Of a stretch of 64,000 bases of DNA, positions 139-41,696 are shown one piece after another (position 1 is the stretch's first letter; each line of letters starts with the position of its first letter). Source of the DNA: Octopus sinensis (Eukaryota); contig NC_043009.1 in the NCBI RefSeq assembly GCF_006345805.1, forward strand, positions 372,001-436,000, written 5' to 3'. The translations under genes were made by a program, and so were the position numbers. The notes beneath the pieces are model-generated. The model was given only the letters and a program-made list of their open reading frames with translations, had not been told where the DNA came from and did no database searches.

Positions 139-244
139 TGATTGGCTGTGCCATGGCTGACTGCAACATGCAAAAGATGATGGAATGCCAAAGTCAATAC
201 GCTCCGAAGATGCAAGACGGCGGAGATAAAGAGACTATGTGCAA
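139..244 (+). CDS. Gene A, internal coding exon (end of signal peptide plus N-terminal mature domain) of a small 6-Cys secreted/GPI-anchored protein
   Basis: Acceptor tttgtttcag| and donor |gtaaga. 106 nt, phase 1 to 2, reads xIGCAMA-DCNMQKMMECQSQYAPKMQDGGDKETMC(K). Phase-compatible with 4512-4633 and conserved with its splice sites in the inverted copy at 41591-41696. Confidence 0.85.
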
Positions 245-802
245 GTAAGATAAATAAATAAATAAAAAACAAAGAATTTTTTTCATTCTTCCATCGTTCT
301 CTTCTTCTTAATACATTGTCAGGAGATTTAGTTTCGTACTCATGAGGAGCCAGGTTCGATCCACCTAAGTGGTGCCTATGTCAAGTTTTGTTAACCTCTA
401 AATCTAGGATTGACTTAATCCGCGTGGCGAGGACACAGCTCCAGTGTTCAGGAATTTGGAAGAACAAGTAGTCTCCCCTTAATTGCGCCCTATTCTTAGT
501 GACTTTCTGACCCGGAGAGGTACTACTCTACAGTTATAGATCCAGCAACAGATTGATCCTGTGGCCATGGCGTTGCATCAGGTCTACCTGCCAGTGAGTA
601 TTTTTGTATGGGAGTCAGCGATATAATTGGAAAAAAATACATTCAAAGGGAGAGGCGAAGGTCACTCGTGTGTGTGTGTGAGTGTGTGTGTGTGTGAGTG
701 TGCGTGTGTGTGAGTGTGTGTGTGTGTGAGTGTTTTTCTATGCTCCTCCCACCACCGCGTAACAACCACTGTTGGATTATTTATGTCTCTATAACTTTGT
801 TT

Positions 803-1060
803 GTGGAGGTGCGTGGCTTAGTGGTTAGGGTGTCGCCATCATTAGCATAAGAATGTGGTTTCGATTCCTGGACCGGGCGATGCGTTGTGTTCTTGGGTAA
901 AACACTTCATTTCACGTTGCTCCAGTCCACTCAGCTGGCAAAAATGAGTAGCCCTGCGATGGACTGGCGTCCCGTCCAGCTAGGGTACTCATATACCATC
1001 GAAATAGGGAAACTGGGCCCATGAGCATGGCTAGGCTTTAAAAAGTGCGAATTTATTATT
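803..1060 (+). mobile_element. tRNA-derived SINE
   Basis: A box tggcttagtgg, B box ggtttcgattcc, then gatggactggcgtcccgtccag core. Confidence 0.7.
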
Positions 1061-1289
1061 ATTTTATTTTTTTGTAATTTTGTTTGGCAAAACCGCCCGA
1101 TAGAATAAGTACTTAGCTTCAAAAGCGAAAGCGAGTACTGGCATCAATTTGTTCGACATCAAAATAGAGCCCCAGGAGGGCCGTCTGATAACTAAAGCAA
1201 GTAAAAGAAAATATGGAGGAAAGGTTATTTATCGTCCATTTTATGGAAAATTAATAACACTAATTTCAAATAATATACACTTTCACACC

Positions 1290-1515
1290 AGGCGGCGAGC
1301 TAGCAGAACCGTTAGCACGCTGGGCGAAATGCTTTGCGGTATTTCGTCTGCCGCCACGTTCTGAGCTCAAATTCCGCCGAGGTCAACTTTGCCTTTCATC
1401 CTTTCGGAGTCGATTAAATAAGTACCAGTTATACACTGGGGTCAATATAATCGACTTAATTCGTTTGTCTGTCCTTGTTTGTCCCCTGTGTGTTTAGCCC
1501 CTTGTGGGTCGTAAA
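1290..1515 (+). mobile_element. Cephalopod-type tRNA-derived SINE (related copies at 52105-52335 +, 54775-54980 -, 46200-46330 -)
   Basis: ggcggcgagctagcagaa...gagctcaaattccgccgagg...cctttcatcc...aagtaccag, repeated across the window. Confidence 0.7.
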
Positions 1516-2509
1516 GAAATAGGTATTTCATCATTCTTTGCGTTCAAATTGCGCAGTGGTCAGCTTTCCCTCTCATCCTTTCGGCATCGATAAATTAAAT
1601 ACCAGCTACGTTCTGGGGTCGTACTGGACCCCACCCCCACAAAAAATTCGTTCTTTGTTTCTAGTGTAGGGAAAGAATACACACTTTCAGTCAACTTAGA
1701 AAACCATCTTTTATTTATTTAATTTTTTTGTTCTTTACTTTTTTCAGTCATTTCAGTGCAGCATGCTGCAACATGGCCTTGAAGGGTTTTAGTCGAACAA
1801 ATCGACCGCAGGACTTATACTTTGCAAACCTAGTACTAACTCTATCGGTGTCTTTTGCCGAAATGCTAAGTTACGGGAACGTAAACACGTCAGAATCGGT
1901 TTCCAAGCGATATCGGGGAGACAAACACAGACACACAGAAAGACACACGCACAAACACGCACACACATATATATTTATATATATATATATATTTATATAT
2001 ATATGTGTGCGTGTGTGTGTGTGTGTGTGTGTCTGTGTGTGTGGTGTGTGTGTGTGTGTGTGTATACAGTTTCCGTCTACCAAATCCACTCACAAGGCTT
2101 TGGGCGACCCGAGGCTATAGTAGAAGACACTTGCCCAAGTGGCAACGCGGTGGGACTGAACCCGGGACTATGTGGTTGGTAAGCGAGCTACTTTATTTTA
2201 TTTTATTTGCCATCGGTATCTTTTGCCGAACCGCTAAGTCACGGGGACTTAAACACGCCAGAATCGGTTTCCAAGCGATATCAGGGAGACAAACACAGAC
2301 ACACAAAAACACACACACACTCACACACACTCACACACACATACATGTATATATATATATATATATATATATATATATAATATATATATATATATATATA
2401 TATATATATATAAATATACGGTGGGCTCCTTTCAGTATCCGTCTACCAAATCCACTCACAAGGCTGAACCCCGGACTATGTGGTTGGTAAGCGAGCTACT
2501 TTATTTCAT

Positions 2510-39330: not shown

Positions 39331-39452
39331 TTGATGACTCTGGACATCCTAATTTTTTAATGGATTGACGAACTTGGTCGAATATTTTCTCCACTTCATC
39401 ACCGCAACCGCTAGCGGCCGAATCCATACAGTTCATGAAGTCTGAAGCTACT
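39331..39452 (-). CDS. Gene B, next coding exon
   Basis: 122 nt with AG/GTAAGT borders; reads (K)VASDFMNCMDSAASGCGDEVEKIFDQVRQSIKKLGCPESS(N). Confidence 0.87.
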
Positions 39453-40254
39453 CTATAATGGTGGAAAGAAAGAAAACATTGAATATTTACATAGGTGCAG
39501 GCGTAGCTGTGTGATAAGAAGCTTGCTTCCCAACAACATGGTTCCAGATTCAGTCCACTGCGTGGAATCTTCAGGAGGTGTCCTCTACTATGGCCTCGGT
39601 CCAACCAAAGCCTTGTGAGTGGATTTGATAGACGGAAACTGAAAGAAGCCCGTGTCTAACTACATAGGAATGGCTGTGTGGTAAGTAGCTCGCTTACTTC
39701 ACAACAGAAGAGTTCGCGTTTTTATACGCTCCGAAGTCATATCGTTCGAAGTCGAAATATTGGAAAACTGAAGCACGACTACAGGTAAGGCGTTTATTTT
39801 GGGGGGAGGTCAGTGGAGTCCGTTGTTTCGTAATTAATAATTTTTGACGAGCAAGGGTCTCCACTGGGTTATTTGCCTGCATGTGGTCCTGCAAAAAGAC
39901 TCACTGTGTAGTGAGAATTGTGTTTTTCTTGAGGGGGGCGTATCCCCTCCGGAAATTTATGATTTTATGTGACTGTGGATTTTAAGTGACTTCGTGGATG
40001 TTACCAATTGGAGTACAACCAGAATTTTACTATTTGGAGTACAACCAGGAATTTTTTGCTGCTATTTTTGTGCTGCAAGGGATTTTTAACTGTGCGACAA
40101 AGGATTACCAGAGTTGAATTTTGTTGTCCTTTGAACTGTCATCCTTCGTTCTTTTCCTCTATTCTGTCATTCTGCTTTTTTTGTGTTTGCATTGGGGACT
40201 CTTATCTGAACATTTTTGATTTTGTTATGAACTTTTACAGTTTATTTTATTTTA

Positions 40255-41106
40255 TTGGTGATAAACAAATGTAAGAAAGCCCTGGGTGGCGAATTGTGGA
40301 CCTCAAGGACTGGTTCAAACTATGATGCGGGAACGGTGTTGTTGCGTCCCTATTGCAAGGACCGCGACACCATCTGTGTATTCCCTCAGAGTGAAATTGA
40401 AGAAGAGTCGGCTGGATTTGAGCCAACTTATAGGTTCATCCGTAGGGGGACAATGTACGCTACGGTGTGCGTGCTTTTCGACACCCCTACGGAGGCTCAG
40501 AAATTTGCGAGACAACTTGAAGATGGGATGAAGATTTTGCTTCTCCCCACGTATGGTGTGCGTAAATTGACAAGAGCCTGGGTATGTGGGCTGCCGCCCA
40601 GTACAGTAGATGGATGGATAGAAGATTCTATCCGTCGAGGCCTGAGTGGTGGCCTTGCCAGGCTCTTAAGTGTAAAAATACTGCCTGCGGTCGAATGGGT
40701 CGGGCTAAAAGCAATATTCACCCAAAGAGCCCGATCGGCCGAAGATCTGGTTTTACCAGATTTCTTGACAATGGCTGGTTCCAGGCACCCGGTGATCACT
40801 GAGGGACGCCCCCCACCCAAGTGTCACATGTGCATGGAATCAGGGCTCATGAAGAACTGTTACCGGGATCAGGCGGATGTCCTGGAACAGTTGATTCATG
40901 GATGTGAACACACTGTTCCCCCAACGGAGACTTCTGCTCCTTCACTGGAGAAAGTTGAGGAGGAGGTAACCTCCTCGAGAAAAGGTACTAAGAGGAACAA
41001 GGTGGGCAACAATGGTTGCCCGCCGATGGCGGGACGGGAGGAGGGACCTCCGGATATGTCGGAGGAACTCCACCCTCCCGCCGCAAAGGGGAAAAGAGGG
41101 ACATAA
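40255..41106 (+). mobile_element. LINE ORF1-like (gag-like zinc-knuckle) reading frame, no adjacent ORF2
   Basis: 283 aa with an RRM-like region and GRPPPKCHMCMESGLMKNC; lies in an intron of gene B, antisense to it. Confidence 0.65.
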
Positions 41107-41590
41107 ATAATCCAACCGTGGTTGTTACGCGGTGGTGGGAGGAGCATAGGAAAACACTCACACACACAGACGAGTGACCTTCGCCTCTTCGAATGAATGT
41201 ATTTTTTTCCAATTATATCGCTGACTCCCACATAAAAATATTCACTGGCAGGTAGACCTGGTGCAACGCCATGGCCACAGGATCAATCTCTTGCTGGATC
41301 TATAACTGTAGAGTAGTTCCTTTCAGGGCCAGAAAGCCCCTAAGAATAGGACGCAATTAAGGGGAAACTACATGTTCTTCCAAATTCCTGAACACTGGAG
41401 CTGTGTCCTCGCCACGCGGATTAAGTCAATCCTAAATTTAGAGGTTAACAAAACTTGACCTAGGTGCCACTTGGGTGGATCGAACCTGGCTCCTCATGAG
41501 TACGAAACTAAATCTCCTGACAATGTATTAAGAAGAGAACAATGGAAAAATGAAAAAATTCTTTGTTTTTAATTTATTTCTTTATCTTAC

Positions 41591-41696
41591 TTGCACCGAG
41601 TCTCTTTATCTCCGCCGTCTTGCATCTTTGGAGCGTATTGATTTTGGCATTCGATTACCTTTTGAATGTTGCAGTCAGCCATGGTACTGCCAATCG
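41591..41696 (-). CDS. Gene B (paralogue of A), internal coding exon
   Basis: Reverse complement: tttgtttcag|CG ATT GGC AGT ACC ATG GCT GAC TGC...TGC AA|gtaaga. Reads xIGSTMA-DCNIQKVIECQNQYAPKMQDGGDKETRC(K), 106 nt like copy A. Confidence 0.85.

Follow-up and report, generated by a model that had tools for sequence, protein, structure and literature searches.

The gene cluster and its models

We analyzed a 64,000-nucleotide (nt) stretch of the Octopus sinensis genome (CM016871.1:372001-436000, assembly GCA_006345805.1; hereafter the window, in whose numbering coordinates are given), in and around which lie three inverted copies of a gene for a small six-cysteine protein. The coding sequence of each copy is split into four short exons, and its product is a precursor of 115 amino acids (aa). 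The copies, designated A, B and C, are arranged in the order A(+) B(-) C(+), with A and B tail-to-tail and B and C head-to-head. A preliminary description, made from the letters of the DNA, had proposed an unannotated pair of such genes. The pair proved to be a three-gene inverted cluster, and both copies then described are modelled in RefSeq as uncharacterized proteins, LOC115218432 (copy A) and LOC115218434 (copy B). The genes are thus annotated but unnamed, and our literature search found no paper mentioning LOC115218432, LOC115218434 or LOC106875478.

Coding exons 2, 3 and 4 of copy A lie on the + strand at 139-244, 4512-4633 and 11929-12011. Exon 2, which has a phase-1 intron on its 5′ side and a phase-2 intron on its 3′ side, encodes the end of the signal peptide and Cys1 to Cys3 (helix 1). 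Exon 3 covers Cys4 to Cys6 (helices 2 and 3), ends at GCPESS and is followed by a phase-1 intron, while exon 4 supplies the spacer, a hydrophobic C-terminal tail resembling a glycosylphosphatidylinositol (GPI) signal, and a TAA stop codon whose last base is 12011 and not 12013 as first given. The splice acceptors end in TTTCAG, TATAG and TTTCAG, with a polypyrimidine tract ahead of the AG, and the donors read GTAAG. Joining the three exons by script at these canonical sites, with phases 1-2, 2-1 and 1-stop, reproduced exactly the 102-aa peptide proposed earlier. The copy A peptide is 100% identical to the RefSeq protein P0001, named "uncharacterized protein LOC115218432 isoform X2". Coding exon 1 of copy A sits 5.2 kb upstream of the window start, and an AATAAA hexamer at 12172-12177 (+), read off the sequence about 160 nt 3′ of the stop codon, is a candidate polyadenylation signal.

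The N-terminal residues that the joined peptide lacks, MNGLYYGICLLF, were supplied by the database proteins. The signal-peptide exon is 37 nt long; it reads ACCACC ATG ... TTC G followed by GTAAGT, encodes MNGLYYGICLLF plus one base, and ends in phase 1. It occurs twice within the window, at 49405-49441 (-) and at 61749-61785 (+), so that the upstream signal-peptide exon on which the earlier gene proposal had been made to hinge is present on both strands. The minus-strand occurrence is coding exon 1 of copy B, with the ACCACC-ATG start, MNGLYYGICLLF plus G and the donor GTAAGT in phase 1. The joined-exon reading places coding exons 2, 3 and 4 of copy B at 41591-41696, 39331-39452 and 31195-31277 on the same strand; exon 4, which contains the stop codon, has the same sequence as exon 4 of copy A. 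The splice sites of copy B are as good as those of copy A and its reading frame is intact. Therefore, with exon 1 located at 49441-49405 (-), copy B is a complete four-exon, 115-aa gene inside the window, and the claim of a second intact copy on the opposite strand was borne out. It corresponds to RefSeq XP_036363987.1 (LOC115218434), labelled "uncharacterized". We rejected a chance pattern of pseudo-exons because the exons match RefSeq proteins and orthologues in other species.

The plus-strand occurrence at 61749-61785 is coding exon 1 of copy C, whose exons 2-4 fall 5-8.6 kb past the window end. Exon 2 of copy C (L001 about 84333-84435) carries a 2-bp deletion in the assembly, GCTCCG to GCCG; either the deletion is genuine and makes copy C a pseudogene, or it was introduced in the assembly. 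A second RefSeq model of LOC115218432, isoform X1 (P0002), combines exons 1-2 of copy A with exons 3-4 of copy C and spans 77 kb over the opposite-strand copy B (L001:10001-87806, equivalent to window -5244 to 72561). Since copy C's own exon 2 carries the deletion, isoform X1 is probably a chimeric model that arose as a modelling workaround. An assembly artefact might also account for the near identity of exon 2 in copies A and C, as it might for the deletion.

Protein architecture and family spread

The 115-aa precursor consists of a 19-aa signal peptide, a six-cysteine domain of about 65 aa, predicted to have three helices, and a C-terminal tail resembling a GPI-attachment signal. Completed by exon 1, the signal peptide is MNGLYYGICLLFVIGCAMA, followed by DC; it has a hydrophobic core and an A-x-A motif and fits the -3/-1 rule by a heuristic check of the sequence, which agrees with the signal-peptidase site between AMA and D in the preliminary description. 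The cysteine pattern first reported, C-x7-C-x17-C-x8-C-x7-C-x19-C, was confirmed, and the six cysteines presumably form three disulfides. An AlphaFold2 (AF2) model built on a 13-sequence alignment has helices at residues 23-38, 43-60 and 66-81, with a predicted local distance difference test (pLDDT) score of 70-81 over the domain, as expected of the small secreted helical protein initially envisaged. An earlier AF2 run on five close sequences gave a pLDDT of 53 and was left out of the fold search.

Inspection of the sequence and its hydropathy resolved the tail into an SSN cluster, a 9-aa spacer, a 12-aa hydrophobic run and a final KKLLL. The small-residue cluster, the spacer and the hydrophobic C-terminus, all three noted in the preliminary description, are conserved in the family, and GPI attachment is predicted near the SSN cluster. 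The cephalopod members (P0001, P0022, P0006, P0016 and P0008) have the hydrophobic run, KK and three hydrophobic residues at the C-terminus, with endings such as AFKKLLL, AFKKLIL, TLKKLFL and ALKKYIV; the oyster members are without KK. Conservation of KK at this place is odd, because this portion of a GPI signal should be lost on processing.

Orthologues were found in Argonauta hians, O. vulgaris and O. bimaculoides. A full HMMER scan of 1.84 billion representatives with a shallow 5-sequence profile returned 11 proteins, whose sources include A. hians, further paralogues of O. bimaculoides and O. vulgaris, two Saccostrea oysters, a Logan contig, a JGI protein whose two domains stand in tandem, and a marine metatranscriptome; other marine eukaryote sequences of the family come from metagenomes. 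The relative P0008 is a contiguous 116-aa open reading frame on a 1.7-kb Logan contig, which is consistent with a spliced transcript. All relatives compared keep the six cysteines, and the majority begin with a signal peptide and end in a hydrophobic stretch. A word-indexed search started from the 13-sequence alignment brought in almost no new members. The family had been called lineage-restricted and impossible to name. The first part was partly supported, with the reservation that members also occur in oysters and among marine eukaryote sequences; as to the second, the family can be tied remotely to neuritin and the RGM N-domain, as set out below.

Automatic UniProt names for three O. vulgaris and O. 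bimaculoides members (P0005, P0023 and P0015) are "Lipoprotein" and "Saposin B-type domain-containing protein". The second name, given to A0A0L8IGH8 (P0015), raises the possibility of a saposin-like (SapB) lipid-binding protein, and the small size, the six cysteines and the all-helical prediction would suit such a protein. However, no SapB_1 or SapB_2 model of Pfam matched any of the 13 members at E up to 10, and NK-lysin appeared only at rank 23 of the Foldseek search described below, with a probability of 0.06. The model has three helices as against four or five in the saposin fold, and its cysteine spacing is unlike that of saposins, which have two closely spaced cysteine pairs at the ends. 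We therefore rejected a saposin-like identity as highly improbable, and both UniProt names look like rule-based misnomers. Ly6/uPAR proteins resemble the predicted octopus protein in being small surface proteins rich in cysteine, made with a signal peptide and a GPI signal, and their genes too are often clustered. They adopt beta-sheet three-finger folds with 8-10 cysteines, whereas the octopus protein is predicted to be all-helical with six cysteines, and no UPAR_LY6 Pfam match was seen among the 13 members.

Probable kinship with neuritin and the RGM N-domain

We consider that these genes probably encode a divergent mollusc neuritin-like protein, belonging to a group formed by NRN1/CPG15 and the RGM N-domain and sharing the architecture and gene structure of neuritin. 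When the 13 family members were compared with 24,736 Pfam models, NRN1 and RGM_N were the families that matched most members, all at scores below threshold. NRN1 (PF15056) matched copy A at 19.2 bits (E=1.4e-3), copy B at 21.4 bits (E=2.9e-4) and P0008 at 15.5 bits, none of which reaches its gathering threshold of 27 bits. RGM_N (PF06535) matched 6 of the 13 members, best of all the oyster protein P0012 (E=3.6e-4, 21.1 bits against a gathering threshold of 24.2 bits); copies A and B alone gave no RGM_N match.

Searches of solved structures led to the RGM N-domain. The family profile, compared with PDB sequences, matched the RGMA N-domain best (E=0.006), with the cysteines aligned, and RGMB and RGMC chains made up three more of the six matches listed; the shallow 5-sequence profile gave no match in the same search. 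A Foldseek search of 350,542 PDB chains with the AF2 model (domain pLDDT as above) returned RGM N-domains in all of the top seven places, with probabilities of 0.75-0.93, template modelling (TM) scores of 0.54-0.60 and E values of 0.15-0.5. A neuritin profile found no solved neuritin structure in the PDB, and for this reason the structure searches could not have picked neuritin.

Comparisons at the profile level covered both families. The hhalign alignment of the mollusc family with vertebrate neuritin domains had a P value of 6.6e-4 over 52 columns, with Cys3 to Cys5 in register, and the alignment with RGM-N had a P value of 0.016, with Cys3 to Cys6 in register. The family hidden Markov model (HMM) scored 21-25 bits on the neuritin domains of human, frog and shark, a score reached by none of 2000 shuffles in which the cysteines were held fixed. 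On RGMA it scored 19.5 bits (reached by 1 of 2000 such shuffles) and on RGMB 13.7 bits. The core spacing C-x8-C-x7-C is identical in the mollusc family, neuritin and RGM-N.

These results bear on a competing explanation, in which the octopus protein is a free-standing RGM-N-type domain protein, kin to the BMP-binding RGM N-domain, and resembles neuritin in its cysteine framework only. RGM_N is the Pfam family with the most member matches, chains of RGMA, RGMB and RGMC prevail among the PDB sequence matches as well as in the Foldseek results, and the hhalign register with RGM-N extends to Cys6. The RGM N-domain (RGMA, RGMB and RGMC/hemojuvelin; PDB 4UHY, 4UHZ, 4UI1, 4UI2, 6Z3J and 6Z3M) is a three-helix six-cysteine module on a GPI-anchored protein, as is predicted for the octopus protein, with Cys2 to Cys6 in register with the family. 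However, the dominance of RGMs in the structure searches is offset by the lack of a neuritin structure to choose, and the family HMM scores higher on neuritin than on RGMA or RGMB and survives cysteine-fixed shuffling. RGMs are proteins of about 430 aa in which the N-domain is followed by a vWD-like domain that cleaves itself at a GDPH site. In the octopus protein, the hallmarks that follow the RGM N-domain (the RGD motif and the vWD-like domain with its GDPH cleavage site) are absent; it ends at 115 aa after a single domain and tail, so that what is only the N-terminal part of an RGM is the entire mature protein here. The architecture of the whole protein and both NRN1 introns agree with neuritin instead. 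Taken together, these points make the RGM-N-type explanation unlikely.

Neuritin/CPG15 (NRN1, NRN1L) has a signal peptide, a single six-cysteine helical domain and a GPI-type signal within fewer than 150 aa, a plan that the octopus protein matches as judged by sequence inspection and hydropathy (115 aa here, 142 aa in neuritin), and to this architecture are added the common core spacing and the in-register profile match. The intron positions extend the likeness to gene structure. In NRN1 of deer, milkfish and shark, a phase-1 intron lies within the signal peptide and a phase-2 intron lies in the codon directly after Cys3; octopus copies A and B and the oyster gene have both introns, with position in the alignment and phase unchanged. 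The chance of a coincident intron after Cys3 was estimated at about 1% (3 introns over about 345 codon-phase sites). The molluscs differ from NRN1 in having an additional phase-1 intron, common to octopus and oyster, five residues after Cys6.

A further alternative is that the family comprises helical surface or secreted proteins, rich in cysteine and specific to molluscs, and that its matches to neuritin and RGM reflect convergence among small helical bundles stapled by disulfides. Every similarity score lies below threshold, and the scan of 1.84 billion proteins yielded no vertebrate protein. Against this, independent methods single out one pair of families from among tens of thousands, the similarity goes beyond cysteine positions alone, as the shuffles indicate, and the exact position and phase of the intron in the codon after Cys3 are held in common with NRN1. 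We regard convergence as quite improbable.

Several observations nevertheless weigh against kinship with neuritin. The Pfam scores of 19-21 bits fall short of cut-offs of 24.2-27, the Foldseek E values are 0.15-0.5, and the hhalign probability is 27%. No vertebrate neuritin came out of the HMMER scan, which was made with the shallow 5-sequence profile. Compared with each other by hhalign, as thin alignments, neuritin and RGM-N had no detectable similarity (P=0.69); the three-way link therefore depends on the mollusc family as an intermediate. The loops of the mollusc proteins are shorter than those of neuritin, x7, x17 and x19 as against x9, x24 and x27 for Cys1-2, Cys2-3 and Cys5-6. Phase-1 signal-peptide introns are common among secreted-protein genes, and therefore only the intron after Cys3 constitutes strong evidence. 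Finally, the conserved KK and three hydrophobic residues at the very C-terminus, by which the cephalopod tails differ from neuritin, are unusual for a GPI signal, and because the KKLLL ending is atypical, a short membrane anchor may stand in place of GPI. The octopus gene further differs from neuritin in lying in a three-copy inverted cluster. Overall, several weak signals, none of them past a curated threshold, agree in direction, toward a domain of the neuritin and RGM-N type.

On this basis, we suggest a putative route for the octopus protein. The precursor would enter the endoplasmic reticulum, where the signal peptide would be cut after AMA; oxidation would close the domain into a compact bundle of helices, and a GPI anchor would replace the C-terminal tail close to the SSN cluster. 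The mature protein would then stand on the outer face of the cell membrane, from which it might be shed, and it might serve as a small protein-binding ligand or co-receptor, comparable to neuritin on neurons or to the RGM N-domain, which binds BMP ligands. A specific neuronal function may be envisaged, with much less confidence than the kinship itself.

Neuritin/CPG15 is a widely studied activity-regulated factor in neurite growth and synapse stabilisation, and we know of no account of neuritin or of its activity-regulated neuronal role from outside the vertebrates. In our neuritin search, the 120 matches listed were all vertebrate. The activity-regulated role in vertebrates is the subject of a review (PMC12715718). 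Our search of the literature, which was not exhaustive, found no invertebrate or mollusc neuritin homologue and no stated link between neuritin and RGM. With the genes themselves already in RefSeq, what is possibly new is that they can be linked to neuritin and to RGM-N, which would give a family so far regarded as confined to vertebrates a protostome branch. More tentatively, and with some doubt, we speculate that these are the first recognised protostome neuritin/CPG15 homologues and that neuritin and the BMP-binding RGM N-domain descend from one ancient GPI-anchored three-helix module, linked by the mollusc family. In octopods, the family would have expanded through palindromic duplications, giving paralogues that differ mainly in helix 1 and possibly diversify a neuronal surface ligand.

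A mollusc family alike in architecture and in the intron after Cys3 would move the origin of the module back at least to the bilaterian ancestor, tie neuritin to the RGM N-domain fold, and offer cephalopod neurobiology a definite set of candidate genes. Should the homology prove wrong, an ordinary duplicated gene for an uncharacterized small secreted protein remains. A practical gain is the correction of a probably chimeric RefSeq isoform and of two misleading automatic UniProt names.

Inverted duplications, paralogue divergence and repeats

Self-comparison of the window revealed two inverted duplications, which gave rise to the paralogues. The arms of the tail-to-tail duplication, 2-17851 with copy A and 20804-41810 with exons 2-4 of copy B, are 89-92% identical (2-17851 against 41810-20804), rising to 98.2% in the inner part, 14468-17851. 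Those of the head-to-head duplication are 92.4% identical (47201-51028 against 63952-60303); the left arm, 47201-51028, holds exon 1 of copy B with its 5′ region, and the right arm, 60303-63952, holds the corresponding parts of copy C.

Copies A and B agree at 103 of 115 residues, including all six domain cysteines. They differ at 15 of 313 coding positions, mostly as amino-acid changes within the signal peptide and helix 1; positive selection between them was not demonstrable (pN 0.049, pS 0.033, pN/pS about 1.5, Fisher p=0.74). Exon 2 (139-244 against 41591-41696) is 89.6% identical between the two, below the flanking introns (93-94%), and exon 4 is 100% identical. There are hints, without statistical support, that helix 1 is under relaxed or diversifying evolution.

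In O. vulgaris, the B-type orthologue P0005 carries B-specific residues, and the A/C-type gene P0003 is located at a syntenic chromosome end. Since O. vulgaris possesses a B-type gene with B-specific residues, the A/B duplication is older than the divergence of O. sinensis and O. vulgaris. This orthologue and the 89-95% identity of the arms make it unlikely that the A/B duplication is an assembly artefact. The B-type gene (L003, OX597836.1, about 44.8 Mb) and the A/C-type gene (L002, OX597826.1, about 0.35 Mb) of O. vulgaris lie on separate chromosome-scale scaffolds, unlike the adjacent genes of O. sinensis, a contrast that stems either from rearrangement or from the way the genomes were assembled.

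An open reading frame for an IS1595/ISXO2-like DDE transposase lies at 15715-16395 (-), within the 98.2%-identical segment that forms the inner 3.4 kb of the tail-to-tail duplication (14468-17851 against 20804-24198). Such a segment suggests gene conversion close to the palindrome centre or a pair of transposons of recent date. The introns of the copies are full of transposon remnants, which were seen within or between the genes at 9119-11650 (+), 32709-37700 (-) and 25825-29946 (+). Non-LTR reverse transcriptase sequences (RVT_1, zf-RVT) occupy mirror positions in intron 3 of A and of B, and the stretch that separates copy B from the palindrome centre holds a Helitron-like element with a PIF1 helicase. 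Microsatellites are abundant (1-120, 6025-6633, 11800-11880, 49300-49400 and 61820-61890), with (CA)n/(TG)n where the window begins, (ATA)n ahead of copy A exon 4, and (GA)n right after exon 1 in both B and C.

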